A DNA stretch of 11,531 nucleotides, from positions 1 to 11,531 of IMG/VR virus record IMGVR_UViG_3300008216_001605; one strand, given 5' to 3'. Numbering within the stretch: position 1 is the stretch's first letter; every line of letters begins with the position of its first letter. Below are positions 1 to 11,531 of the stretch, piece by piece. The translations under genes were made by a program, and so were the position numbers. Under the pieces are notes generated by a model, which did not search any database, was not told the origin of the DNA, and worked only from the letters and a program-made list of their open reading frames with translations.

Positions 1-30
1 ATGTTTAGATGAGACGTAATTATATATAAA

Positions 31-56
31 CTACGGAAAACGTACCATTTTTGTAG
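31..56 (+). terminator. Possible hairpin/terminator of the upstream gene
   Basis: ctacggaaa (31-39) pairs with tttttgtag (48-56), including two G-U pairs; no clear U-tail. Confidence 0.25.
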
Positions 57-60
57 AAAA

Positions 61-74
61 TATAGTATAATAAA
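61..74 (+). promoter_or_regulatory. -10 element (TATAAT) upstream of the head operon, without a canonical -35 (possible late promoter)
   Basis: TATAAT at 66-71 in tatagTATAATaaa; no TTGACA-like hexamer 16-18 nt upstream. Confidence 0.45.
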
Positions 75-75
75 T

Positions 76-170
76 CGTGTAACTATATTATAGTTATGCG
101 GGTTTAGAAGGTCGGAAGTGGCTTAGACCAACCTTCTTAGGATATCATATATTATATATACTAGGAGGGT
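76..170 (+). promoter_or_regulatory. Structured 5' leader and RBS of the scaffold gene
   Basis: Inverted repeat cgtgtaactata-t-tatagttatgcg (76-100); stem agaaggt (106-112)/accttct (131-137); SD AGGAGG at 163-168 before ATG 174. Confidence 0.5.
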
Positions 171-173
171 ATT

Positions 174-1010
174 ATGGCAGACGATGTTCTAAATCGGATA
201 GAGAAACACATGGAGGGTAATACGTTGGCCCTTTCTGCTGTTGCGGAAGTCTTGCAGAAGATGGATGACCGTTTTATTCGTGATGAAGATGCGGTTCTTG
301 CAAAACAAGAGCAGGAACAGGCGTTAGATGAACGGACTACAATGGTTAAAGCCATTGCTTCGGAAGTCTATGGCATGATTAAAGCTGACAATGGTATGGA
401 CGTAGATGGCACGAAGGTACGGTCTGGAACTAGGATGAAGGGTAGGGGTGAAGATTCTGAATCTCCAGTAAATCCTACTACTAAAATTTCAGATCAGCAA
501 GCCACCATTCAAGCTGCAGAAGATGAAGAAGAGAATGGAAAAAAGAAATTTAATTTTGACAAGAAGCAGGATGATGAAGAAGAGGAAGAAGTAGAAAAGG
601 AAGGAAATGGCGCAAAGGAGTATCCTGAGGAAGAAGAAGAAGCAAAGAAAGGAATGTATAAGGGCGAGGATGAAGATAAGGAAGAAGATGATAAAGAGAT
701 AGAAGAGATGGCTAAAGAGCTTGATGCTTTGAAAAAGCAGATAGCTAATACTGAGGCTAATATGCAAAAGGCGGTGCAAGCAGAGTCGGAGCAACGGCTT
801 CGGAAGATGGGATTTAGAGAGGAATTGGGTCTTCAAGCTCCCCAACAGATTAACCCCCTGGGAATTGATGGAACTACGCCACTTATAAAAGCACAGGAAT
901 CTGTGGATACAGTTGATCAGTTAGCTGGTATGTCTTATAAGGAACTGCGTAACCTTCAGGCTCAGATTGAAATGGGGAATACTGATGGGGTACCACGGGA
1001 ATTACTATAA
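174..1010 (+). CDS. Capsid scaffolding protein (putative)
   Basis: 278 aa with a strong SD, an E/D/K-rich low-complexity centre and helical/coiled-coil ends; lies directly upstream of the major capsid gene, the usual scaffold position. Confidence 0.75.
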   Translation: MADDVLNRIEKHMEGNTLALSAVAEVLQKMDDRFIRDEDAVLAKQEQEQALDERTTMVKAIASEVYGMIKADNGMDVDGTKVRSGTRMKGRGEDSESPVNPTTKISDQQATIQAAEDEEENGKKKFNFDKKQDDEEEEEVEKEGNGAKEYPEEEEEAKKGMYKGEDEDKEEDDKEIEEMAKELDALKKQIANTEANMQKAVQAESEQRLRKMGFREELGLQAPQQINPLGIDGTTPLIKAQESVDTVDQLAGMSYKELRNLQAQIEMGNTDGVPRELL

Positions 1011-1034
1011 AATTTAAATTAAAGGAGTCACACT

Positions 1035-2375
1035 ATGGCTAATCCTAGTTTATCAGAATACCTAGCACAGTCACAGCGGGGCTTGTATCAGTCGGTATTC
1101 GGCCCTGAATACCTAATGAAACAGTCCTATTTCACTGTTGATACTGCTACTGGTATCTTCAACACAACTTATGGACGCAAGGTGTGGCAAGCTTTGAACA
1201 ATCAGACTCGTTTCTTCAACGCTGTCCCAAGGGTAGTTTGGGGTAATACGGCTGGTTGGCGTGTCAGAACTGACCGTGGCTCAAGTAGGTCACGACCAGT
1301 AACTGAGACGGGGAGTCTCCCCACTGTCGATGTCTCCAATATTGCTACAGTATCGAGCTTGCCTCGTATTGTTTCCACGACCTTCGGTGCTTCTGTGAAG
1401 TCCGTCTTCACCGCACAGTTGGAAGGTGGTATCGGAGATGTTCTGGCGATGGAGAATGAGAATTCTCAGCTTGACCATATCAAGGAAATCAATGAAGAAT
1501 TGTTGGCTGGTGGGGCATTTATTGTATCTGCTGGTTCAACGACCTCCTTCACAGTACCCGCTGCTGTGGCCCATCACTTTAAGGTTGGTGATGCGGTAGC
1601 TATGAATGATGCTACCAGCGGTTTTGACAGGACTAGTGGTTCTGTAGTTTCTGCGGTTAACACTTCTACTGGGGTAGTGACCGTAGCTACTGGCACAGCT
1701 TTCGCAGATGGTGACCTAGCCTATTCTCACAGTAGGGCTGGTTTCACTTCCCTTGATGACATTGTAGCCGAAGATGGCATGGTTATCGGGGGTGTGACGA
1801 ATGGTGCCGAAGTTAGGGCTTATGACCTAACTTACAGTGACCGTGTTGCTGGTTCGTGGAATGCTGCTGCCAGCGTTCAGTTAAATAGTGGGACTGGACG
1901 AGCTTTATCCCTCACTCACCTGGATACTGCTATCCAGAAGATTCGTGAGAATGGTGGGGAGCCAAAGCTCATCCTTTTGGGCCATGACCAATACTTTAAC
2001 CTTGAACGTTTGTTAAACTCTAACCAACGTTATATGGGTCAGGAAGAGTACCAAGTTGGTGTGGGTTCAGAACGAACCTTCCCAGGTACCCGAACTGGTT
2101 TGGTTTTGGCTACCTATCAGGGCATTCCCATCCTACCAGATGCGGATGTGCCTAAGTCCGTGGCATCTAATGATGCAGTTTTGGGTTCCAACATCTATGT
2201 GTTGGATACTGATTACCTAGAAATTGCAGTTGCTCAACCTACGCAGTATGTTGAGAACCGTGACTACTTTGCTGCTAATGCGTTGGTAGTGAGGGGATTG
2301 CTCTACACAATGGGCGAAATGCGGTGCAAGAATCTCTGGGTACAGGCTAAGATTGGGGATTTGAACGCTTCCTAA
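1035..2375 (+). CDS. Major capsid protein (HK97 fold) with a beta-rich insertion domain
   Basis: 446 aa with SD AAGGAG. HK97-like succession of segments: VWQALNNQTRFFNAVPR, E-loop-like VTETGSLPTVD, spine helix DHIKEINEELL, A-domain LDTAIQKIRENGGEPKLILL and YQGIPILPD...IYVLDTDYL. Followed by a strong terminator. Confidence 0.85.
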   Translation: MANPSLSEYLAQSQRGLYQSVFGPEYLMKQSYFTVDTATGIFNTTYGRKVWQALNNQTRFFNAVPRVVWGNTAGWRVRTDRGSSRSRPVTETGSLPTVDVSNIATVSSLPRIVSTTFGASVKSVFTAQLEGGIGDVLAMENENSQLDHIKEINEELLAGGAFIVSAGSTTSFTVPAAVAHHFKVGDAVAMNDATSGFDRTSGSVVSAVNTSTGVVTVATGTAFADGDLAYSHSRAGFTSLDDIVAEDGMVIGGVTNGAEVRAYDLTYSDRVAGSWNAAASVQLNSGTGRALSLTHLDTAIQKIRENGGEPKLILLGHDQYFNLERLLNSNQRYMGQEEYQVGVGSERTFPGTRTGLVLATYQGIPILPDADVPKSVASNDAVLGSNIYVLDTDYLEIAVAQPTQYVENRDYFAANALVVRGLLYTMGEMRCKNLWVQAKIGDLNAS

Positions 2376-2383
2376 TTTTTCCT

Positions 2384-2418
2384 GGGGGGGTGGGCATAAC
2401 CCCACCCCCCTTCTTTAT
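2384..2418 (+). terminator. Rho-independent terminator after the major capsid gene
   Basis: 10-bp stem ggggggtggg (2385-2394)/cccacccccc (2401-2410), loop cataac, followed by ttcttta. Confidence 0.85.
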
Positions 2419-2429
2419 ATGGAGGAAAG

Positions 2430-2603
2430 ATGAGAATAAATCGTCCTAAACATCCTACTTTAATCCGTTATGATGATAACGGAAACCCTATAGATTATTA
2501 TAGGAAATCTCCTCTTCCTAAGTTTGGAACTAATAACCCTATTCAAGTATTGAGGAAAATGCAACATGACTCAAATGAGAAATCGGATAAATCCTCTGGA
2601 TAA
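2430..2603 (+). CDS. Small basic, Pro-rich hypothetical protein (57 aa; not in the ORF track)
   Basis: GGAGG at 2421-2425, then ATG 2430: MRINRPKHPTLIRYDDNGNPIDYYRKSPLPKFGTNNPIQVLRKMQHDSNEKSDKSSG*. Overlaps the next ORF start. Confidence 0.55.
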   Translation: MRINRPKHPTLIRYDDNGNPIDYYRKSPLPKFGTNNPIQVLRKMQHDSNEKSDKSSG

Positions 2604-2862
2604 TGATGGGTTAGAAGTCAAAGTTGCGGTGTATATGGAACGTCTAGATACTTATATAGAGACTTCCACCGAATTAAATAGAACTTTAGTTTCCGGTTTA
2701 GAAAGAGTTAATGATGAATTAGATGAATTAAAACAATGGCGCACTAAATTTTATGGTGCCAAAACCCTCTTTATGTTTCTCTTTGCAATGTTTGCCCATG
2801 CAGGGGTGGTCTTAGCTGCAATAGTTGGCATTTTAAATTGGTACGCAAAATCCCCAAATTAA
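2566..2862 (+). CDS. Coiled-coil plus C-terminal TM protein (XhlA/holin-like architecture)
   Basis: Heptad region LEVKVAVYMERLD...LDELKQWR followed by the hydrophobic segment LFMFLFAMFAHAGVVLAAIVGIL. Confidence 0.6.
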   Translation: MTQMRNRINPLDNDGLEVKVAVYMERLDTYIETSTELNRTLVSGLERVNDELDELKQWRTKFYGAKTLFMFLFAMFAHAGVVLAAIVGILNWYAKSPN

Positions 2863-2877
2863 TGATAGGAGTCTTGC

Positions 2878-3801
2878 ATGGCTAATGAACGACATAATGA
2901 TGCACGAGAATGGGAGATAGATTCATCTACCCGACAATCTGTTCATCCTTATACAAAATATTCTCCCTTCAGAACTGCAACTTCTACTACAGCCGCTAAT
3001 TTATTAGCTATTGATAGGGGGGAGATTGCAGTAAACTGGGTCACTAACCCTAGAATAGAGGCTACAGATGTTAGTATGTTTACAGCTACGGGAGCTACTG
3101 TTGCTAGAGATACGGGCCAAGCAGCTGTAGGGTCAGCTTCTCTCCTCACTAATCCAGGCAATGCTGGAGCAGGTGAGGGTTTTTATTGGGTTTCTCCTAG
3201 TGTCCCTTTTAGTGTAACTCCTCAACATCTCACGGCTCAATGTGAGGTTAGGGGAGCTTCTGCATCAGGAAGTGTTAAGATACAGATTACTGATGCCTCT
3301 GGTGTGGAACTTGCAACTTCTGCTGATACTAATTTAACCACCAGTTTTGCACAAATTACTGCTTCTTATTCCATAGCAGGCAGTACTGCCGCAGCAACGT
3401 ATAGAGTTTATGTTGTTAGTGCTGCAAACCATAATATTAACTGGTATACTGATAAGATAATGTTTGAAGTACGGGAAGATACTAATGCTGTATCGACTTA
3501 TGTAGATGGAGCTTCTGGTTTGAATTATGAATGGTCGGGAACAGCTAATGCATCTACTTCTAGGAAGCGTCCTGCCATGTCTGTCATACGTGGGATACAG
3601 ATTAAAAATGAATCTGGGACTAGTGCTGAAATTGTGTATGTATCTTTTGATTCAACCGCTTCTACTACTACGGGAATCTCAGTATTAGCGGGGGCAACGT
3701 ATGAATCTAATTTTCCTATAGACTTTAGAGAGAATGTCTCCATAATATCTGCTTCTGGAACTCCTACTGTTAGTGGAGTAGTGTGGGGAGTCAATGGTTA
3801 A
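2878..3801 (+). CDS. Virion structural/decoration protein with a carbohydrate-binding-like beta-sandwich insert
   Basis: 307 aa, rich in Ala/Ser/Thr/Gly, SD AGGAG. NWVTNPRIE...YVDG resembles phage CBM-like jelly-roll domains; C-terminal beta-strand domain IQIKNESG...IVYVSFD...GISVLAG. Confidence 0.55.
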   Translation: MANERHNDAREWEIDSSTRQSVHPYTKYSPFRTATSTTAANLLAIDRGEIAVNWVTNPRIEATDVSMFTATGATVARDTGQAAVGSASLLTNPGNAGAGEGFYWVSPSVPFSVTPQHLTAQCEVRGASASGSVKIQITDASGVELATSADTNLTTSFAQITASYSIAGSTAAATYRVYVVSAANHNINWYTDKIMFEVREDTNAVSTYVDGASGLNYEWSGTANASTSRKRPAMSVIRGIQIKNESGTSAEIVYVSFDSTASTTTGISVLAGATYESNFPIDFRENVSIISASGTPTVSGVVWGVNG

Positions 3802-5300
3802 TGGGTACCTCTACGATTCAAACTGCAGTAGGTAAAATACCTAGTCCGTCTAATTGGGCATTCAATACTGAGATGTATCAGACTGTTGGTATTGATGCTA
3901 CCATACTTCCTATTGAAAAACAAGACAGTGGTAAGGTCACATTAGAAGATATTTCTAGTGCCCTTGATGAATATAAACGTTTATTTAAAGCGGGAATAGC
4001 ATCTAAAGCCGAACTTATAACTTTGTCTAGAGCTTATCCCGATGATTCTACTTATTCTAAAGCTGTCTCTAAATTAAGTGAAGGCGATGCGATGGTCTTA
4101 GGTGGCCCCGCATCGGTGGAATTAATTGATAGAGAAGGCCATTTAATTACTACACAAGCTTTAGAAAAAGCTTTTCATAAATATATGGATAACTTCCGTA
4201 CTAGGAATACAATGGTACTCCACAGTGACGTTCAGGTAGGGTGGGCCTTGCCTGCTTATATTTCTAAAGGTGGTCAGATATTTAAAGCTGGGGTGGGAGA
4301 AAACGGTTTATTCTTCATTACGGAATTGAGGGACGATACCAAAATAGCCCAACGGGTTATGGATCAAGTTAATGAGGGAAAGCTAAAGAGTTATTCTATT
4401 GCAGGGAGTGCCACCAAAGTACAGAATATGCAGAAAGGTTTACAACCCTATATGCAAGTAGACGAAATGGAACTGGCCGAAGTTACGGTATGTGAGAAGG
4501 GTGTAAATCAAAGTGCTGGATTTGATATATTAAAGGCTAAAGGAGCCGTTACTACTTGTATTGATGGTAGTTGTCTCATACAAAAACAGGAATGTGATGG
4601 TAGTTGCGTTATTCAGAAAGAAGAAGGTAAAATTACCCAGATAGATTCAGGCTATAGAAATGCTACTGATGTAGAAATGAAAAATGGTATTATGTGCGGT
4701 ACCTGTAAATTTTTTAATAAACAAGAAGGGACATGTGATATAGTCGAAGGAATGATTGAAGATCACATGTACTGTAAAGTGTTTGCACCATTAGATGAAT
4801 CGCCAACTATTGATGAAGGAAGGGAGTTAATTATGTTAATGGAAAAATCAGACGGGTCAATTGATTTTGTGGGGTCATTCTTGAAATGGATAGAGAAACA
4901 AGGCACATCTTCATCGCCAAAAGAAATGGCTGCGACCTTTGCCACTCTATTGAATACTGCGGGAAGGCAAGCAGAACACCACCAATTACTACGGGAGTAT
5001 GGATTTCCTTCTGAGCAACCCCCCGAAGCTATGAGATATACCCCAGTCATTGAAACAGAAACAGATGACTTTGGAATTCCTGTACACATGAAACCCCCTT
5101 GGACTGTAAATGAAGCTGGGTCGCATCTAGGAAAGAAATTAGATGCTGATGCCCCTACTTATGATACTTCTATAGCTGCTAAAGCACATAAAGATTTGCA
5201 AACTAATATGCATCCTTGGTATTCTACAGAAATCTCAGTGTCTTTTCCAATACGGAAAGCTTTTTCCAAATGGTTTTCTGATAATGAATTCTATTTATAA
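3801..5300 (+). CDS. HK97-family prohead (capsid maturation) protease with long N- and C-terminal extensions, including a HiPIP-like domain
   Basis: ATG 3801 overlaps the upstream stop (TAATG), SD GGGGAG. Core at ~4092-4540: GPASVELIDREGHLI, catalytic His in VLHSD, Ser in LKSYSIAG, and LAEVTVCEKGVN. CxxC-x9-C-x12-C at 4695-4775. Confidence 0.85.
   Translation: MGTSTIQTAVGKIPSPSNWAFNTEMYQTVGIDATILPIEKQDSGKVTLEDISSALDEYKRLFKAGIASKAELITLSRAYPDDSTYSKAVSKLSEGDAMVLGGPASVELIDREGHLITTQALEKAFHKYMDNFRTRNTMVLHSDVQVGWALPAYISKGGQIFKAGVGENGLFFITELRDDTKIAQRVMDQVNEGKLKSYSIAGSATKVQNMQKGLQPYMQVDEMELAEVTVCEKGVNQSAGFDILKAKGAVTTCIDGSCLIQKQECDGSCVIQKEEGKITQIDSGYRNATDVEMKNGIMCGTCKFFNKQEGTCDIVEGMIEDHMYCKVFAPLDESPTIDEGRELIMLMEKSDGSIDFVGSFLKWIEKQGTSSSPKEMAATFATLLNTAGRQAEHHQLLREYGFPSEQPPEAMRYTPVIETETDDFGIPVHMKPPWTVNEAGSHLGKKLDADAPTYDTSIAAKAHKDLQTNMHPWYSTEISVSFPIRKAFSKWFSDNEFYL
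4562..4626 (+). repeat. 33-nt (11-aa) tandem duplication inside the protease gene
   Basis: tgatggtagttg at 4562-4573 and 4595-4606; encodes DGSCLIQKQEC / DGSCVIQKEEG. Confidence 0.8.
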
Positions 5301-5332
5301 TCATAATATATAATATTCTTTGCCCATTGAAC

Positions 5333-5360
5333 TTGACTTTCTTCTCAATTAGTGTATAAT
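5333..5360 (+). promoter_or_regulatory. Sigma70/SigA-type promoter
   Basis: TTGACT (5333-5338), 16-nt spacer, TATAAT (5355-5360), in an intergenic AT-rich gap. Confidence 0.75.
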
Positions 5361-5400
5361 ACAATAAAGGCACCACTTGGAAGAAGGTACTGGGACAAGA

Positions 5401-5589
5401 ATGATAAGTATAAGTATTGGTATTGTCATAGTGGTTGGGATAATCGGATGGATAGTTAAGATTACTTCAACGAAAGGACACTCCCTAGAATATTATAAAT
5501 ATATGGAAAATAACAAACGTCCACCCCCATCTTATTTCGATCATTATGTCATGGAAGAATTGATACATCCTTATCGTTTAAAAAACTAG
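5401..5589 (+). CDS. Small single-pass membrane protein
   Basis: Likely ATG 5401 (the track uses TTG 5377); N-terminal TM ISISIGIVIVVGIIGWIV. Confidence 0.6.
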   Translation: MISISIGIVIVVGIIGWIVKITSTKGHSLEYYKYMENNKRPPPSYFDHYVMEELIHPYRLKN

Positions 5590-5597
5590 GCTAATTA

Positions 5598-5750
5598 ATG
5601 AAATACTTACGCCCCCAAATTTTACTTAGTATCCTAATATTAGGAGCTATAGCAATATTGTCCCTAGAGTTAGGACATATTGAAATTACTACGGGGTGTA
5701 TTACTTTATTGGGGGCATTGGGAATGAAAATTTTAGAGTCAGACAAGTGA
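5598..5750 (+). CDS. 50-aa two-TM membrane protein (holin-like; not in the ORF track)
   Basis: MKYLRPQILLSILILGAIAILSLELGHIEITTGCITLLGALGMKILESDK*: two hydrophobic helices and a charged C-terminus; fills the gap between + strand genes. Confidence 0.7.
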   Translation: MKYLRPQILLSILILGAIAILSLELGHIEITTGCITLLGALGMKILESDK

Positions 5751-5875
5751 AAAAGAGTTGGGTACGCTGTCCAGGGTGTAGTCGAAAGCAACATGCTAAA
5801 ACTACTAAGTTTGGAACTATGTGTACGCCTTGCGCTAAACAAGGCAAACAGGTTAAGACAGGCCGATTTAGATAA
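5747..5875 (+). CDS. 42-aa basic zinc-finger protein (not in the ORF track)
   Basis: GTG start overlapping the upstream stop (GTGA): MKKSWVRCPGCSRKQHAKTTKFGTMCTPCAKQGKQVKTGRFR*, with CxxC-x14-CxxC. Confidence 0.65.
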   Translation: MKKSWVRCPGCSRKQHAKTTKFGTMCTPCAKQGKQVKTGRFR

Positions 5876-5890
5876 TTAAGGAGTGATAAG

Positions 5891-6100
5891 ATGGTAGAGT
5901 GTTTTTGTGATATGAATGCATACGTTTTAACAGGTCTTTGTGAATGTGAAGAAGATTGTGTTTGTGAATGTGAGGTATGTGGGTGTAACCCACACGGTTT
6001 AAATCCAGAAATTGGTTTATGGTATGCAGATCCAGTAGAATCCCCTGTTTGTGCTTGTGGTGGAAACTGTAGTTGTGAGCGAACTTATGATGACAATTAA
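5891..6100 (+). CDS. Metallothionein-like Cys-rich protein
   Basis: 13 Cys in 69 aa, all in CxC motifs; strong SD TAAGGAG. Confidence 0.7.
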   Translation: MVECFCDMNAYVLTGLCECEEDCVCECEVCGCNPHGLNPEIGLWYADPVESPVCACGGNCSCERTYDDN

Positions 6101-6440
6101 TAGAAAGGTATTGATTAAAGGATTATTCCTAGGAATTACTTTAGGTACTTTTATATGTAAATCTTTCTATGGTACTAGCAGTCGTACTTTACAAGATTTG
6201 GACAGGTATAAAACCACCCTGACCGCTATCTTAGATGCAGGAAAAACTTCGGGAATAACTATAATAAATGTTATTAATTTGCTTAAAGATAATGATGTAA
6301 GTCCTGAAGAAATGTTAGTATTAGCAGAAACTATAACAGCTAATAAGAAAACTTTAGATAAAACTCTTACTCTTCTTATTAAAGATTTGAAAGACCATGC
6401 CATTGAAAAAACAAAGGAGAAGGGGACACATGACCAATAG
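6087..6440 (+). CDS. Hypothetical protein with an N-terminal signal/TM anchor
   Basis: Likely start ATG 6087/6090; basic residues, then VLIKGLFLGITLGTFIC, then a helical body. Confidence 0.65.
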   Translation: MMTINRKVLIKGLFLGITLGTFICKSFYGTSSRTLQDLDRYKTTLTAILDAGKTSGITIINVINLLKDNDVSPEEMLVLAETITANKKTLDKTLTLLIKDLKDHAIEKTKEKGTHDQ

Positions 6441-6627
6441 ATTACTTCATTTAATTAATAGACTAAGAGGAATTTTTCTTTCTATGGAAGAAAGAGAAAA
6501 AGAAGTACGTGGGAATGAAACAAAAATATTAGCTTTAAATCTAGAAATAAAAAATCTAAAGGAAGATCAAGATGATGCTATGAAAGCTTTAGATGATTTA
6601 GAAACAGTTATTAAAAAATGGGAATAA
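6430..6627 (+). CDS. Coiled-coil hypothetical protein
   Basis: ATG 6430 after GGAGAAGGGG; heptad pattern ILALNLEIKNLKEDQDDAMKALDDLE. Confidence 0.65.
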   Translation: MTNRLLHLINRLRGIFLSMEEREKEVRGNETKILALNLEIKNLKEDQDDAMKALDDLETVIKKWE

Positions 6628-7085
6628 TAACGACTAGAATTTTAGATCTCACTAGGGCAGTGACCCCACCTACTTTAACAGAACCTTTAGATGAACATGA
6701 TACTGTGTGGATAGCACAAAGATTATTGGATGCCAATCTGATAGGCGGTGCAATGCAACGCAAAACCCTAGACAGTAAGTATTGGACTTGCACCCGTTTG
6801 GATTTCGATGCTATAATCAAGTGGGATTGGACGGACAATAAAAAATATGTAGCAGAAAAATATGATTGCGATAACTTTGCCTTTAGCTTTAAAGCCAGGA
6901 TGGATAGAAAATTTCATTTAAACAATGTGGGATTGGTGGTTGACTATTCGGGTGGACACGCTTATAATTGTGTCGTCTTTTCGGATGGCACGGCCGAACT
7001 CTTTGAGCCACAGAGCGATTTATTCACGACCTCCCAATTAGGGACTGGATACTATAAATGTGAATCGGGATTTATATTAATATAA
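6618..7085 (+). CDS. Papain-like/transglutaminase-like cysteine protease (MOA lectin C-terminal, Agglutinin_C-like domain)
   Basis: Motifs YDCDNFA (Cys), GHAYN (His) and FEPQ (Glu) in the family order, preceded by D-x-x-Y. Confidence 0.75.
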   Translation: MGIITTRILDLTRAVTPPTLTEPLDEHDTVWIAQRLLDANLIGGAMQRKTLDSKYWTCTRLDFDAIIKWDWTDNKKYVAEKYDCDNFAFSFKARMDRKFHLNNVGLVVDYSGGHAYNCVVFSDGTAELFEPQSDLFTTSQLGTGYYKCESGFILI

Positions 7086-7312
7086 TGATTAATGATAATG
7101 AAGAAAAATATAGGGAATTATTAGAGGCCGTTAGACCCCATTTTCCAAATGACCTAGCACAAGCATATGCTATAGTAACTGCTACCATTGGCCCTATCTT
7201 TAATACCGTTTTATTACAATTAGTGTGGAGACAATTAGAATTAGAATATATTCCTGATTGGACGAAGGCTCTACCATATGAAGTCTTTATCCAACGATTT
7301 AGTCTGAATTAG
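7085..7312 (+). CDS. Hypothetical protein
   Basis: 75-aa ORF coupled to the upstream gene by a TAATG overlap. Confidence 0.65.
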   Translation: MINDNEEKYRELLEAVRPHFPNDLAQAYAIVTATIGPIFNTVLLQLVWRQLELEYIPDWTKALPYEVFIQRFSLN

Positions 7313-7450
7313 TATCTTCCCAGTTAAATCGGGGGAGTAAGGAGGTGATCCATTCTCACCTATGGGGGCGTCTGAAAATGATGCCCCCAACCACTTGACT
7401 CATTTGGCTAAATGTGCGAAGATGGTGAAAATAAATTTTGAGAGGTGAGC
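7313..7450 (+). ncRNA. Structured RNA element with an extended 16S-complementary sequence (putative sRNA or translational leader)
   Basis: Stem 7316-7321/7332-7337; TAAGGAGGTGATCCA at 7338-7352; stem AGGTGA (7343-7348)/TCACCT (7356-7361); 10-bp GC-rich stem 7363-7372/7380-7389. Confidence 0.55.
7362..7448 (+). CDS. Possible 28-aa leader ORF
   Basis: MGASENDAPNHLTHLAKCAKMVKINFER*. Its TGA lies inside the SD of the next ORF, but the start is at the base of a hairpin and the SD spacing is long. Confidence 0.25.
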   Translation: MGASENDAPNHLTHLAKCAKMVKINFER

Positions 7451-7525
7451 ATGGAAATTAATGACCCAGTTAAAGCTTTTTGGATATTTATTATCGTTGG
7501 CATATTAGCATCTATGATATTATGA
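7451..7525 (+). CDS. 24-aa hydrophobic single-TM peptide (not in the ORF track)
   Basis: SD GAGGTGA (7442-7448) close to ATG 7451; MEINDPVKAFWIFIIVGILASMIL*; stop overlaps the next ATG (ATGA). Confidence 0.55.
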   Translation: MEINDPVKAFWIFIIVGILASMIL

Positions 7526-7821
7526 ATACAGAGAATAATGAATCCCCCATGCCCGAATGGGCCAGATTAGGAACTGAATTAATAGAAGGGTCAATGGAGA
7601 CACCTTTTTATGAGGAAGCAGTTCGTTTATTAAAGACCCCTGGAGTAGACCCAGCTTTATATATGTTTTTCTGCTCTTTACCACAAGGATACATATATAT
7701 AACTAATAAGTATCCGGTAGGTACGTGGTCAGTTGAAGAAGTAAGAAGATTAATGCAATGTGCTTTTATGTTAGGAACATATGTAAGGAAATCAGTTGAG
7801 GAAGTAGAAAAATTATGGTAA
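7522..7821 (+). CDS. Hypothetical protein
   Basis: Start revised to ATG 7522 (ATGA coupling) rather than TTG 7480. Confidence 0.65.
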   Translation: MNTENNESPMPEWARLGTELIEGSMETPFYEEAVRLLKTPGVDPALYMFFCSLPQGYIYITNKYPVGTWSVEEVRRLMQCAFMLGTYVRKSVEEVEKLW

Positions 7822-8018
7822 TGTCCTATTTAATTACGTCTAATGCAGAATATAATACTAGAATTAATGAGATTGAAGACAAGATTGATAGAATGTTAGA
7901 TAAATTACAGACTTTAGAGTATAATATTAATATAATATCTACTGCTTTAAATAAGGAGTTAGATAATATATCGGATATAATTAGAACATTAGAGGGTAAT
8001 CGCCATAAAGTAGGTTAG
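7815..8018 (+). CDS. Coiled-coil hypothetical protein
   Basis: Heptads INEIEDKIDRMLDKLQTLEYNI; start 7815 or 7821. Confidence 0.65.
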   Translation: MVMSYLITSNAEYNTRINEIEDKIDRMLDKLQTLEYNINIISTALNKELDNISDIIRTLEGNRHKVG

Positions 8019-8029
8019 GAGGGACTAGT

Positions 8030-8854
8030 ATGAGTTTATCTAAAATTGAAATTCATGAGAAGGTTTTATACCCAGTCACAAAAGTTTTAGCTGGGCAAGC
8101 AGGCGGAAGTGGAGTATTGGTTTATAGTGAAGAAGACCCCGATAAACCTAATAACTACATAAATATAGCTTTGACATGTCAACACGTTATTGATGGGGCC
8201 ATTAAAGTATCTGAACAATGGGATAACGTTCTTAAAAAGGACGTAAAGACTGACGTACTAGAAGAAGTTCGTATTGAAGTCTTTGACTATGACAAGAGTA
8301 AAGTAGTGTCTGCTAATTCTACGACAGCCCAAATCATTGCGTATGATAAACACCATGATTTAGCTGCTGTTAAATTAAATAATACTAGACCTATGGCTCA
8401 TGTAGCTAGTATTATTCCCAAAGAAGAAATAAAAGACTTACAAGTTGCTGATCCTATATGGGTTAGCGGTTGTTCGCTCCTTCATGACCCCTTTCCCAGT
8501 CCAGGAAATCTAACGTACCTTAGAGAAATCATTGACCAGAAATCATATGTAATGCAGAATGCTCCTAGCATCTTTGGAAATTCTGGTGGTGGTTTGTTCC
8601 ATGGAGATACTGGACATTTATTGGGGCTAACGTCTAGAATTACTTCTACTCAATTAGGATTCGGTATAGATATTATGACATGGATGGGATTTAGCACCCA
8701 CCCAGAGAGATTATACGAGTTCTTTGAACACCAAGAACTTCAGTTTTTGTTTGACTCTACGGATAATTATCATGATGCATTACATCGTAGAGACAGTCGT
8801 AGGCACGAAGCTTTACGAAATCTCTTGTTTGAATCTAAGGGAGAAAGTCCATAA
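8030..8854 (+). CDS. Trypsin-like (S1/HtrA-like) serine protease, stand-alone
   Basis: GSGV, ALTCQHV (His), HDLAAVKL (Asp), IFGNSGGGLF (Ser); SD AGGAGG. Confidence 0.9.
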   Translation: MSLSKIEIHEKVLYPVTKVLAGQAGGSGVLVYSEEDPDKPNNYINIALTCQHVIDGAIKVSEQWDNVLKKDVKTDVLEEVRIEVFDYDKSKVVSANSTTAQIIAYDKHHDLAAVKLNNTRPMAHVASIIPKEEIKDLQVADPIWVSGCSLLHDPFPSPGNLTYLREIIDQKSYVMQNAPSIFGNSGGGLFHGDTGHLLGLTSRITSTQLGFGIDIMTWMGFSTHPERLYEFFEHQELQFLFDSTDNYHDALHRRDSRRHEALRNLLFESKGESP

Positions 8855-9162
8855 TGTTAGATGAACGAAGATGGATAGCTCAGAACTGGAAGATTCCCGA
8901 TACAGTACATTGGCATCCTTGTTGTCAGGAACACCCAGACGTTTCAATCCAACAATCTTTAGTAGGAAAGACATCTTCTGATGATTCAGAGAAAACCTCA
9001 GTAACTTTTAGATGTCCTAGAGGTCATGAGTATGAAGCTCCTGAACCCTTTATTCTTACTACACCTGATGCAGAATGTAATTCTGGCCCGTTATGTATTT
9101 ACTGTTATGTTACATGGTTACATATTAATATTGGCACAGAAGAATTTATTGTCAAAGATTGA
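8854..9162 (+). CDS. Cys/His-rich putative metal-binding protein
   Basis: HWHPCCQEH, CPRGH and C-x5-CIYC; TAATG coupling. Confidence 0.65.
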   Translation: MLDERRWIAQNWKIPDTVHWHPCCQEHPDVSIQQSLVGKTSSDDSEKTSVTFRCPRGHEYEAPEPFILTTPDAECNSGPLCIYCYVTWLHINIGTEEFIVKD

Positions 9163-9163
9163 T

Positions 9164-9367
9164 ATGTTGGTCAAATTTGGATATTGTAGGATATGTGATA
9201 ATGGGCCAGACAAACAAAATAGGCATTGGGTACAAGATTTAGTACAAGGGCAAATCATCGCTACCTCAATATTACGAGAATGTACTAGTTGTGGGACAAC
9301 ACCCCCCAATAAAAATTTACTATATATAGAAGTTAAAGTGGCTCAATTAGGCAAGGAATATGAATAA
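9164..9367 (+). CDS. Zinc-ribbon protein
   Basis: Start revised to ATG 9164, just after the upstream stop; CRIC...CTSCG. Confidence 0.65.
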   Translation: MLVKFGYCRICDNGPDKQNRHWVQDLVQGQIIATSILRECTSCGTTPPNKNLLYIEVKVAQLGKEYE

Positions 9368-9530
9368 ATGGGAACATAGGGATAATAAATTAGAGAAAAA
9401 AAGAAGGATACCTTTTCCTATCTTTAAAGAAATAGTTCCTAAAGATAAATCTAAACAAAAGGAGATTAAACAAGCTAGACGGGATAAGGAAGCTTTTTGG
9501 GATAACCTGGATTCAGAGGGTGATGAATGA
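9360..9530 (+). CDS. 56-aa charged hypothetical protein (not in the ORF track)
   Basis: MNKWEHRDNKLEKKRRIPFPIFKEIVPKDKSKQKEIKQARRDKEAFWDNLDSEGDE*; overlaps both neighbours, with ATGA coupling to 9527. Confidence 0.6.
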   Translation: MNKWEHRDNKLEKKRRIPFPIFKEIVPKDKSKQKEIKQARRDKEAFWDNLDSEGDE

Positions 9531-10027
9531 ATATAAACAGTGATTCTTTTGATTGTGGACATGAAGAAGGTGGAGATGAAGAACCCAAGGTAATTCATCT
9601 TACTAGGGACGAAGTGTTGTATATAGATGATAGATTGACTATGATGATTGAAAAGGATGTACGGGCAGAAGGTTTTACCACTGTAGTTCCTATTGTAGCT
9701 AATGCGGGTTTACCGGCACCAGTAGATTTATTAGATAAAATAGGTATGGCGGTCTTAGAAGTTACTGATGAAGACTATGCAGAGGAATTAGTATCTGTTT
9801 CAGTAACAAGTACAGATTTATATATGTTACGAGAAATTGCAAAAAGTTCTCTTAAGTTAAATGGCAAGTTTGTAGGGCTAGCTTTAAAGAAAAAGATATA
9901 TAAGATTCTCTTTGAAGAAGAATACAAGGCAGATCGTACATTTAAAAGATTGCTTTCAGACATTCATTTAGACGATAGTTTAGAGAGTGAATCATCTAAG
10001 CTCGATTGGAGTGGAGAGTCGGGGTAA
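9527..10027 (+). CDS. Acidic hypothetical protein
   Basis: 166-aa ORF with SD-like GAGGGTGA upstream. Confidence 0.75.
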   Translation: MNINSDSFDCGHEEGGDEEPKVIHLTRDEVLYIDDRLTMMIEKDVRAEGFTTVVPIVANAGLPAPVDLLDKIGMAVLEVTDEDYAEELVSVSVTSTDLYMLREIAKSSLKLNGKFVGLALKKKIYKILFEEEYKADRTFKRLLSDIHLDDSLESESSKLDWSGESG

Positions 10028-10032
10028 TCTAG

Positions 10033-10063
10033 CTTAACATTAATACCACCTCTTAATGTTAAG
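10033..10063. repeat. Perfect 11-bp inverted repeat
   Basis: cttaacattaa / taccacctc / ttaatgttaag. Confidence 0.8.
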
Positions 10064-10091
10064 GGCGGCACTAGGTTACTCTGGTTCTTCC

Positions 10092-10124
10092 AAATGGGTT
10101 CTCTCTTAGAGAACCCATTTCTTA
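10092..10124 (+). terminator. Perfect 13-bp hairpin, terminator-like
   Basis: aaatgggttctct / ctt / agagaacccattt, followed by ctta. Confidence 0.6.
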
Positions 10125-10135
10125 TAGGAGTACTT

Positions 10136-10375
10136 ATGATAGAAATTATGGCGGGTAGTACCCTACTAGGTATATCTTTATTTTTAGCCATTATTAATTG
10201 GAAAATTTATAAAGTAACTGTAGAAATGTTAAAAGTTACTGTAGATATACATTATAGAACTTTAGATTTATTAAAGTGTACTCAGAAAACTTATCAAATA
10301 TTGGGGGGCGAAGATGGGTTGACAATTGCTGACGCAAGTGCTAAAGTAATTCAGACAAAAAATTCAAACCATTAA
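10136..10375 (+). CDS. Membrane-anchored hypothetical protein
   Basis: Start revised to ATG 10136 after AGGAG; TM segment LLGISLFLAIINW. Confidence 0.6.
   Translation: MIEIMAGSTLLGISLFLAIINWKIYKVTVEMLKVTVDIHYRTLDLLKCTQKTYQILGGEDGLTIADASAKVIQTKNSNH
10319..10347 (+). promoter_or_regulatory. Sigma70-type promoter with extended -10, inside the 3' end of the preceding ORF
   Basis: TTGACA (10319-10324), 17-nt spacer ending in TGc, TAAAGT (10342-10347). Confidence 0.55.
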
Positions 10376-10385
10376 GGAAAAGTTT

Positions 10386-10613
10386 ATGTATTATTCCGTG
10401 AAGTCAGACTTTATATGTATGGGGGAACCTTATAATGTACAAGCTATAGTAAAGGCTTATAATTATGCTAGTGCCCAAGTTGCACTAAATTGGCTGACCA
10501 AAGCTAAGACTTGTATGTGTAAGGAATGTTTAGAAAGTTATAAGAAAGATCATTTAGTTTATATAGAACTACCTGAACATATGCCAGTTTATAATATGTG
10601 TGTAAAACCTTAA
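10386..10613 (+). CDS. Cys-containing hypothetical protein
   Basis: 75 aa; TAAGGA upstream; CMCKEC motif. Confidence 0.6.
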   Translation: MYYSVKSDFICMGEPYNVQAIVKAYNYASAQVALNWLTKAKTCMCKECLESYKKDHLVYIELPEHMPVYNMCVKP

Positions 10614-10650
10614 GGCTGGCAAAGATTTTTGGAAAGACGTATCAGTATGG

Positions 10651-10689
10651 AGCTATAGCAAGAATCATTAAGAATGATTCTTGGTAGTT
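10651..10689. repeat. Long intergenic inverted repeat/hairpin
   Basis: caagaatcatt / aag / aatgattcttg (10659-10683), extended by agctat/gtagtt with G-U pairs. Confidence 0.75.
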
Positions 10690-10725
10690 ACTTCGCAAAA
10701 TTAACCCAAATTTAGGAGGTCTTAA

Positions 10726-11001
10726 ATGGTAGCTAGGAGAACCCAGAGCAAAAGCTCTGATAAGAATCAGGTATATCTTGCAAAAGCACGACAAGCAGCG
10801 TACAAATTGGCACAACAGAAAGGGTTTATTACTTCGGATGATGTTGTTAACGTGGTTGGGATGCCCAGTTCCCCTTCGGTAGTTGGCTCTATCTTCAAGG
10901 GTAATGGATTCACTAGGGTTGGTTACACGTCTTCTACTCGTAACTCTGCTCATGGCAGGGAAATAGGGGTGTGGCGTTTAAAGTCTAAGCTTCTAAGTTA
11001 G
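10726..11001 (+). CDS. Basic putative DNA-binding (winged-helix-like) phage protein
   Basis: SD AGGAGG; ITSDDV...VVGSIF...STRNSAHGREIGVW pattern resembles small phage wHTH-like proteins. Confidence 0.6.
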   Translation: MVARRTQSKSSDKNQVYLAKARQAAYKLAQQKGFITSDDVVNVVGMPSSPSVVGSIFKGNGFTRVGYTSSTRNSAHGREIGVWRLKSKLLS

Positions 11002-11017
11002 GCTTAGACTATTTCAA

Positions 11018-11062
11018 ACCATTCCCCAGTTTTGCGGAGGCTGGGGAATGGTCTTCAGTTAT
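11018..11062 (+). terminator. Terminator-like hairpin
   Basis: accattccccag (11018-11029)/ctggggaatggt (11041-11052), then cttcagttat; preceded by a second stem agtctaagc/gcttagact (10982-11010). Confidence 0.65.
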
Positions 11063-11079
11063 TTAAAGAGGAGTAAAGA

Positions 11080-11169
11080 ATGTTTAACCCATTTATGATG
11101 ATAACTAATTTAGGAATTCTAACAGGTGTTTGGATAACGTTAATTTGTTTACTATTAAATGTTATTTAA
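11080..11169 (+). CDS. 29-aa hydrophobic peptide (not in the ORF track)
   Basis: SD GAGGAG; MFNPFMMITNLGILTGVWITLICLLLNVI*. Confidence 0.5.
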   Translation: MFNPFMMITNLGILTGVWITLICLLLNVI

Positions 11170-11343
11170 ATGGCTCCAAAACAAGTAACATATCCAGACG
11201 CATTAGAAATATTAAGGGGGGCATATGAGCGAGAGAAAATACAACTTACTGCCCATATATCTACCTTGGAAGTCTCAATATCTCAACTTAAAGTTAAGAT
11301 TAAGAAGCTTGAAGAACAAGCTGCGAGAAGGGGACTCAAATGA
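11170..11343 (+). CDS. 57-aa coiled-coil protein (not in the ORF track)
   Basis: MAPKQVTYPDALEILRGAYEREKIQLTAHISTLEVSISQLKVKIKKLEEQAARRGLK*; leucine-zipper-like heptads. Confidence 0.6.
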   Translation: MAPKQVTYPDALEILRGAYEREKIQLTAHISTLEVSISQLKVKIKKLEEQAARRGLK

Positions 11344-11368
11344 GTTTACCACTGGAGGAAACTAAGTA

Positions 11369-11531
11369 ATGGATTGTTTCATTTGTAGGAGCAGTGAATC
11401 GAAGGGGGGCCAAGATGCCAACAGGTAAAGACCAAGTGGAATACAATCGGGGATTAACGAGGCTGGCAGAGTCTGCTAGGTTGACCGATGCAGAAATCTT
11501 AGCCATGTTTGAATCAATCTTCGGCCCGAAT
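11369..11531 (+). CDS. Hypothetical protein, truncated by the window end
   Basis: GGAGG upstream; MDCFICRSSESKGAKMPTGKDQVEYNRGL... open to the window end; start uncertain. Confidence 0.5.

Follow-up and report, generated by a model that had tools for sequence, protein, structure and literature searches.

The stretch of DNA considered here (the window: 11,531 nucleotides (nt), positions 1 to 11,531 of the IMG/VR virus record IMGVR_UViG_3300008216_001605, metagenome scaffold Ga0114898_1001911) is a fragment of a tailed-phage genome that carries all genes of interest on the + strand. Comparison with related sequences indicates that its unit of structural genes ends in a non-coding + strand RNA with three hairpins (P1, P2 and P3), and that this junction RNA displays a 14-nt complement of 16S ribosomal RNA (rRNA) that has no start codon and is half folded into P2. 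A conserved sigma-70 promoter is then predicted to start a new transcript near 7430, and the gene of a peptide of 24 amino acids (aa) appears to be the first, ATGA-coupled cistron of a module ending in a trypsin-like protease. This architecture is probably as described. Its best overall explanation, with a probability of about 0.4, is an operon-junction RNA module whose start-less (orphan) Shine-Dalgarno (SD) sequence docks the 30S ribosomal subunit and forms a barrier like that of the STAB-SD elements. The features of the junction are as follows:

7085..7312, + strand: 75-aa open reading frame (ORF), the last of the upstream unit, with stop codon TAG at 7310-7312
7316..7337, + strand: hairpin P1, 6-7 base pairs (bp), its 3' arm abutting the orphan SD
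7338-7351, + strand: start-less super-SD TAAGGAGGTGATCC, a perfect 14-nt complement of the 16S rRNA 3' tail
7343..7361, + strand: hairpin P2, AGGUGA (7343-7348) pairing with UCACCU (7356-7361) across a 7-nt loop
7363..7389, + strand: hairpin P3, 9-10 bp, a GC-rich, terminator-like stem with the loop UGAAAAU
7395-7423, + strand: predicted sigma-70-type promoter with an extended -10 (-35 TTGACT 7395-7400, 17-nt spacer, TGTG 7413-7416, -10 GAAGAT 7418-7423)
7430..7450, + strand: short A/U-rich leader (AAATTTT motif) with an ordinary SD, GAGGTGA 7442-7448, conserved in the alignment
7451..7525, + strand: 24-aa peptide gene (N-terminus acidic, one hydrophobic span), whose stop codon overlaps the next start (ATGA at 7522)
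7522..8854, + strand: further cistrons of the operon (99-aa protein, 67-aa coiled-coil protein, trypsin-like peptidase)

Related loci were collected with the 99-aa neighbour of the peptide, which retrieved 11 viral loci, and with the protease, which retrieved 44; a pattern scan of metagenomes yielded five further members of the element family. The comparison covers 15 relatives overall, the alignment of the RNA element comprises 14 sequences, and that of the promoter and of the long-range helix discussed below comprises 11. The neighbouring proteins of the relatives are 61-78% identical, and the intergenic region is better conserved than the genes. The 14-mer is invariant in 14 relatives except for two substitutions, A to G and C to U, both of which retain the pairing with 16S rRNA as G.U; such wobble-compatible substitutions are expected if an RNA pairs with the anti-SD tail, and unexpected for a DNA site or a minus-strand RNA. 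Within the window TAAGGAGGTGATCC, which includes the AGGTGA of 7343-7348, occurs exactly only at this place, the next-best matches carrying three mismatches, and the SDs of real genes match the 16S tail over only 6-8 nt, compared to 14 nt for the orphan SD. Among the relatives no conserved start codon was found at working distance from the 14-mer, and the indels behind it are not multiples of three.

Concerning the hairpins, P1 (-7.9 kcal/mol, z = -2.1) includes four pairs with compensatory CG-to-UA changes. P2 is predicted to hide the 3' half of the orphan SD; its five core pairs are retained in 14/14 sequences, with invariant arms and a loop variable in length and sequence. This hairpin of the super-SD with the local CTCACCT had been proposed in the initial annotation, and it is real and conserved in the relatives, although its energy taken alone (-7.0 kcal/mol, z = -1.3) is no better than that of shuffled sequences. 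P3 is a stable GC-rich stem of the kind found in intrinsic terminators (-20.3 kcal/mol, z = -5.8) and is 100% paired in the relatives with UA/UG/CG variation (P2 and P3 together 98-100%). The U-run of an intrinsic terminator is absent in the window and its clade (clade A), where the stem is followed by AACCACTTGAC. The region 7313-7470 folds at -55 kcal/mol (z = -4.1). The element folds better on the + strand (z = -3.2) than on the - strand (z = -1.1), and the G.U pairs in P1 and P3 are compatible with a + strand RNA only; the structure is thus that of an RNA on the + strand. A search of Rfam 15 found nothing in 7300-7530 at an E of 1 or better, nor did Rfam give a match at the elements of 15 other loci.

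Some other identities of the structure can be set aside. A lambda-type nut site (boxA/boxB) does not fit, since the loop contains GAAAA here but UAUCAA, UUAU or GACAAA in relatives, a boxA is lacking, and the element is situated upstream of a promoter and not downstream. In a minus-strand RNA mimicking the anti-SD, the A-to-G change would break the pairing, and the - strand fold is the poorer one. Likewise, a separate promoter for a small RNA (sRNA) upstream of P1 was rejected, as the -10-like hexamers there would initiate inside P1.

The same order of parts is found in the sister clade B, in which a small two-span membrane protein ends with TAA and is followed directly, as (TAA)GGGGGTGATCC, by ATCT, a covarying hairpin with a T-run and a TG-extended TATAAT-like box. 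In the example L025, the gene in front (3123-3272) encodes a 49-aa protein with two hydrophobic spans (holin-like), which ends at the TAA abutting the orphan SD. The cleanest case is L196, an unrelated metagenome contig, with a stop codon, AAGGGGGTGAT, a 6-bp fold-back, an 8-bp GC hairpin with TTTTT, and TTGACA-17-TGGTATAAT. Both clade B and L196 possess a canonical hairpin with a T-run at the position homologous to P3 and a TG-extended TATAAT-like box at the place equivalent to that of the window's promoter. These layouts define the conserved unit as a stop codon, a partly folded-back orphan SD, a hairpin 16-18 nt past GGAGG, and a promoter.

A wider class of such elements was found by scanning for the exact 15-mer GTAAGGAGGTGATCC, which occurs in at least 120 viral contigs; the matches listed were grouped into 57 sequence families. 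Among these listed matches, 26/57 families have ATG, GTG or TTG within 0-6 nt and resemble ordinary strong ribosome-binding sites (RBSs), whereas 31/57 are start-less. The motif ATCT follows within ~10 nt in 14 of the 31 start-less families (<1 expected), and a perfect hairpin of at least 6 bp is present in 18/31 of them, mostly 9-14 nt after GATCC, compared to 7/26 of the families with a start. The start-less SDs are also more self-paired than those with a start (median -6.1 vs -3.8 kcal/mol, p = 3e-4). In many cases the gene upstream terminates at the TAA contained in the SD. Ten upstream genes were tested, of which four match PHROG holin families and one a 'hemolysin' family; other upstream genes encode small membrane proteins. 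In some families (L142, L130, L117) the hairpin has a T-run and the next gene leaves no room for a promoter. As far as the sequences tell, numerous phage families without relation to each other carry start-less elements of this type, in many cases behind a holin gene. Searches of cultured phages with two elements of the wider class returned no relatives, and a literature search returned no description of start-less SDs placed before terminators.

Several members of this class deserve separate mention. In the unrelated phages L142, L130, L117, L084, L112, L059 and L138, which probably infect Firmicutes, a start-less super-SD, accompanied by ATCTCC and a hairpin, comes immediately behind a gene that matches a PHROG holin or 'hemolysin' family or that encodes a small membrane protein; L142 and L130 share the element and the gene downstream of it, but their holins belong to different families. 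Three contigs (L068:486-935:-, L097:2105-2539:+, L103:2383-2829:-) have, behind a neck/tail-completion gene, a conserved ORF of ~145 aa whose frame opens at the super-SD, with no ATG, GTG or TTG at working distance; its conservation starts at an ATA 2 nt past GATCC, suggesting that the 14-nt SD drives initiation at AUA. The 92-kb 'viral' contig L090 carries two copies of the 15-mer followed by AACCG, which look like the 3' ends of 16S rRNA genes read on the opposite strand, so that it probably contains host rRNA operons.

Beyond P3 the junction passes into the promoter, whose -35 begins six nt after the hairpin. Across the 11 sequences no variation is seen in TTG.C of the -35, in either G of TGTG, or at -11 A (7419) and -7 T (7423); the A of TTGAC and the two Ts of TGTG are nearly invariant (at least 90%), while the remaining spacer varies. 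Such a pattern is the footprint expected of an extended -10 promoter of the sigma-70 type, and from it a transcription start site (TSS) at ~7430 is predicted. A simple promoter scan had missed the site because GAAGAT matches the consensus at 3/6 positions only; the relatives have TAAGAT, TAAAGT or TATGCT. The suspicion voiced in the initial annotation that TTGACT at 7395 starts a separate transcript is hence supported, as a prediction, by this conserved footprint, and the coupling of the peptide to its leader, which the same annotation would have given up if a start lay at about this place, is lost in silico with the TSS at ~7430.

The leader of the predicted promoter-derived messenger RNA (mRNA) is ~20 nt long and unstructured (7428-7470 at -2 kcal/mol, z = +0.7). 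Its AAATTTT(T) motif (7430-7439) stands just ahead of the first SD behind the promoter, is shared by clade A and clade B irrespective of the gene that comes next, and may be an A/U-rich translation enhancer or a signal of the initial transcribed region; as an archaeal TATA box it was rejected, since the TSS would then lie inside the peptide ORF. The 28-codon ORF at 7362..7448 (+ strand), proposed earlier as a leader ORF, spans P3 and the promoter. Its TGA (7446-7448) does lie within AGGTGAG (7443-7449), as had been stated. Its ATG at 7362 is lost in about half of the relatives (replaced by TAG, GAG, TAA, TAC and others, in L004, L005, L006, L007, L008, L012, L158 and L185), and where the ATG is present the length of the ORF ranges from 5 to 28 codons. 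Given that spacer and loop lengths differ by single nucleotides and that indels are not multiples of three, nothing in 7352-7448 behaves as coding, and the ORF was rejected both as a gene and as a leader peptide.

The peptide gene fares differently in the comparison: its ORF has 23-25 aa in all 11 relatives, the acidic N-terminus and one hydrophobic span are retained, and nonsynonymous difference (pN) is below synonymous difference (pS) in 21/21 comparable pairs. The overlap of its TGA with the next ATG (ATGA), from which a gene run leads to the serine protease, was correctly noted in the initial annotation and is kept in 9/11 relatives. Neither Pfam nor PHROG has a family for the peptide or its small neighbours. 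By these signs the 24-aa ORF is a real, conserved and previously unannotated membrane-peptide gene under purifying selection. In clade B (L023-L029) a similar 25-aa peptide is situated ~100 nt upstream of the protease (in L025 at 3838-3915, just in front of it), whereas the orphan SD with its terminator and promoter is found another ~540 nt upstream, beyond a 146-aa gene. It is thus the protease module, and not the RNA element, to which the peptide belongs.

The peptide had also been likened to a type I toxin. As in tisB/istR-1 and hok/sok, there is a small hydrophobic ORF (24 aa, one hydrophobic span, conserved) with an RBS that, in one form of the RNA, can be hidden by sequence lying upstream. 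Unlike in these systems, the peptide is the first cistron of a conserved operon, ATGA-coupled and syntenic with the protease module instead of forming a self-contained locus; its own promoter is predicted to give an open leader of 20 nt in place of a long structured one that hides the RBS; the masking helix is not conserved; and no antisense or trans-acting RNA partner was found in silico, neither a promoter-like site on the - strand near 7400-7600 nor an Rfam match for an antitoxin RNA. The likeness to a type I toxin locus is largely unsupported.

The favoured reading of the junction, a ribosome dock, runs as follows. A 30S subunit would dock at the orphan SD by pairing with its anti-SD, as at a STAB-SD, and the parked ribosome together with the flanking hairpins P1 and P3 would form a barrier to RNA decay or processing, which would separate the fates of the upstream and downstream halves of read-through transcripts. 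That the orphan SD docks ribosomes is given slightly better than even chances; that docking yields a stabiliser or barrier is less likely than not. The dock is ranked first because the STAB-SD is its nearest precedent: in cry3A of Bacillus thuringiensis an SD-like sequence without a translation start pairs with 16S rRNA, and the 30S subunit blocks RNase J1 and 5'-to-3' decay (PMC4113751). A polypurine 5' stabiliser is also described for phage SP82 (Hue et al. 1995, cited in PMC3997798). Like both of these, the orphan SD is an SD-like complement of the 16S 3' end without a translation start (14 nt, with no conserved start codon); the hold by the 30S subunit is shown for cry3A and proposed for SP82. 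Unlike the STAB-SD (~9 nt), the orphan SD comprises 11-14 nt, is half sequestered in a hairpin, and is situated just past a stop codon, 16-18 nt before a terminator-like hairpin and upstream of a promoter. The dock-barrier reading fits clade A, in which P3 has no U-run and read-through is likely.

Several points weigh against it. The orphan SD lies 92 nt upstream of the predicted TSS, whereas a STAB-SD is near the 5' end of the stable RNA, and it could be 5'-proximal only on a processed read-through RNA. In clade B and L196 a canonical terminator separates the SD from the downstream genes, so that a 5' stabiliser would protect little there. Self-sequestration of the start-less SDs is only modestly above random (mean -6.3 vs -5.3 kcal/mol). 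Neither the constant distance of 16-18 nt from GGAGG to the hairpin nor the ATCT motif is explained by a stabiliser, and P3, having no U-run in this clade, may not terminate transcription at all.

The main rival accounts better for some of these properties, namely the distance between SD and hairpin, the stop codon within the SD and the attenuator-like layouts. It assumes that with P2 closed P3 forms, such that upstream transcripts stop or are processed at ~7389, and that a 30S subunit, whether from the free pool or fresh from termination at the upstream stop, pairs with the 14-mer, opens P2 and covers the 5' arm of P3, such that RNA polymerase reads into the peptide-protease operon. A 30S subunit bound at an SD reaches ~21-25 nt past GGAGG by textbook toeprint geometry, while the hairpin follows at 16-18 nt in clades A, B and C, L196 and L142, and 9-14 nt after GATCC in 13/18 families; many families have the upstream stop TAA inside the SD, and the T-run hairpins of L142, L130 and L117 before genes without promoter room have the layout of attenuators. 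Ribosomes near a terminator hairpin are known to decide its formation or to repress the terminator (PMC4824070), and as in the trp and pyrBI attenuators the ribosome would be placed just upstream of the hairpin whose formation it decides. Different from these, a conserved leader ORF with its start and mutually exclusive antiterminator and terminator helices are absent here, and the ribosome would act by SD docking alone. P3 is present in all folds whether the SD is blocked or not, and persists in 10/10 relatives with the SD blocked, so that the gated hairpin depends solely on steric occlusion; a 30S subunit lacking a start codon and transfer RNA might fail to thread the RNA ahead of it; the U-run is missing from P3 in this clade; and the downstream genes here possess a promoter of their own. 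A literature search found no precedent, nor do we know of one for a hairpin gated by SD docking alone. Gating is thus considered unlikely, and equally so its general form, in which a start-less, self-folded super-SD with a hairpin 16-18 nt on is a widespread phage RNA device with the ribosome as ligand, the 30S subunit deciding whether the adjacent terminator forms. If this is true, transcription of the module that follows (in many cases lysis-related genes behind a holin) would depend on the availability of ribosomes or on whether the gene in front is being translated.

A further rival derives from the initial annotation, which had CTCACCT pair either with the super-SD or with the AGGTGAG in front of the peptide, such that ribosomes on the super-SD would switch peptide expression. 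Its positions (AGGTGA 7343-7348, CTCACCT 7355-7361, ATG 7362, peptide 7451-7525) are all correct, and as a lineage-specific addition the model would have the anti-SD at 7349-7361 mask the peptide's SD and AUG on read-through RNA, with super-SD occupancy tuning the peptide and the coupled genes. The minimum free energy structure of 7313-7470 indeed uses the long-range helix, extended to 12 bp by CCAU:AUGG (the AUGG of the peptide start), at 8.2 kcal/mol better than the state with local P2 and with a pair probability of ~1; the helix takes over when the transcript reaches 7450. When folded individually, L002, L003 and L007 form it as well, whereas 6/10 relatives fold locally. Even with the super-SD blocked, the peptide RBS can be masked on read-through RNA in the window and these three sequences, as the annotation had expected; in the four, opening of P2 would also let UCACCU mask the RBS, but solely when the RNA is a read-through product, the mRNA made from the promoter being exempt. 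Pairs outside the CACC:GGUG core are broken in 3-6/11 sequences, the conservation of the core is trivial because any SD satisfies it, and covariation of the helix is no better than in shuffled or slid controls. The 7-mer CTCACCT/AGGTGAG occurs four times in the window (1.44 expected; 9/200 shuffles do as well), and its complementarity alone is not significant, being simply the SD/anti-SD motif. Moreover, a conserved promoter between the partners gives an mRNA free of the leader, local P2 forms ~90 nt of transcription before its long-range competitor emerges, and the clade B element is not adjacent to the peptide. With a helix that is not conserved, an intervening promoter and a distant clade B element, a dedicated ribosome-availability switch for the peptide finds little support, and the lineage-specific form is improbable. 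A pyrimidine-rich, anti-SD-like motif in a 3' untranslated region (UTR), able to pair with an SD, is described for icaR of Staphylococcus aureus (PMC3868564); the motif of the window is of this kind but is already paired with a decoy SD 7 nt upstream, and its distal target is on the next transcription unit and not conserved. Still less probable is a DNA-level operator bound by a phage or host regulator, composed of GGTGA-N7-TCACC and GGGGGC..GCCCCC at ~-86 to -42 from the TSS. Both palindromes are just upstream of the conserved promoter and the P2 arms are invariant, but in a DNA palindrome, or in the opposite strand, the G.U pairs of P1 and P3 would turn into A.C mismatches, the spacing within P2 is 6 nt in some sequences and 7 nt in others, invariance extends over all 14 nt of the 16S complement, with its two wobble-compatible substitutions, instead of being confined to half-sites, and the layout of SD plus hairpin recurs with unrelated hairpin sequences. 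Lower again is the probability of a stable 3'-end sRNA (SD-P2-P3) that acts in trans by titrating the anti-SD tails of 30S subunits or by pairing target SDs through UCACCU. The fold is compact, conserved and ends in a stable hairpin, and sRNAs derived from 3' UTRs as well as anti-SD motifs in 3' UTRs are known, as in icaR (PMC3868564); the phage's own genes rely on SDs, however, so that a 30S sponge would harm the phage, and no conserved target with extended complementarity was found. The least probable of all is attenuation by a leader mini-ORF, in which the super-SD drives translation from AUU 7352 or ATG 7362 into P3 and melts it. AUU or AUC follows GATCC at 0-1 nt in 9/16 relatives, ATCT is strongly enriched after start-less super-SDs, and a real gene in L068 and L103 appears AUA-started behind the same SD. 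In 7/16 relatives AUH is replaced by AGU, UGU, ACU or GUC, 1-nt indels shift the frame, no peptide is conserved, and ATG 7362 is lost in half of the relatives; a non-AUG mini-ORF, conserved in neither frame nor codon, was rejected.

Returning to the ribosome dock, the orphan-SD module appears to be a new variation on the STAB-SD idea with a wider distribution. If the orphan SD truly docks ribosomes, it would constitute a compact phage cis-element of ~75 nt with the ribosome as structural or regulatory ligand at operon boundaries, the STAB-SD idea would extend from a few Gram-positive genes to many uncultured phages, and a ribosome-gated terminator might be revealed. For annotation, the 24-aa ORF is to be treated as a real membrane-peptide gene that accompanies a module with a trypsin-like protease, the 28-codon ORF is to be left out of annotation, and an SD-like 14-mer by itself is no evidence of a gene start.

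Outside the junction, the following genes were identified in the window:

1035-2375, + strand: SU10-type capsid gene
3783-5300, + strand: prohead-protease-domain protein
6618-7085, + strand: lectin-like protein of 155 aa with a ricin-type lectin C-terminal domain (PF18022, 1e-8)
7522-7821, + strand: 99-aa protein gene, ATG at 7522
7815-8018, + strand: 67-aa coiled-coil protein gene
8030-8854, + strand: trypsin-like peptidase (protease) gene

The lectin-like protein may have a carbohydrate-binding role as a receptor or in adhesion, and its gene contains an 11/12 promoter match and a weak terminator-like site at 6940-6974. The 75-aa ORF behind it is not present in L009-L011, where a lectin-like gene precedes the element. 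Near-identity and protein searches found no close relative of the region or of the protease among cultured phages, and a search for the host through genome contigs led only to unclassified fragments of metagenome-assembled genomes. Among cultured viruses, the capsid protein finds its best matches in tailed viruses of haloarchaea and in a Methanofastidiosa virus (~27% identity); despite these archaeal-virus matches, the promoter and SD features point to a bacterial host.

A hairpin of 11 G/C bp with a T-rich tail at 2384-2411, 9 nt past the capsid stop, has the U-run of an intrinsic terminator and is probably a terminator that raises capsid mRNA over that of the downstream genes; no super-SD is situated upstream of it. 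Near-consensus sigma-70 matches also occur in other intergenic gaps, at 5333-5360 (TTGACT-16-TATAAT) and at 10319-10347 (TTGACA-17-TAAAGT, with TG), and are consistent with the use of host RNA polymerase promoters throughout.

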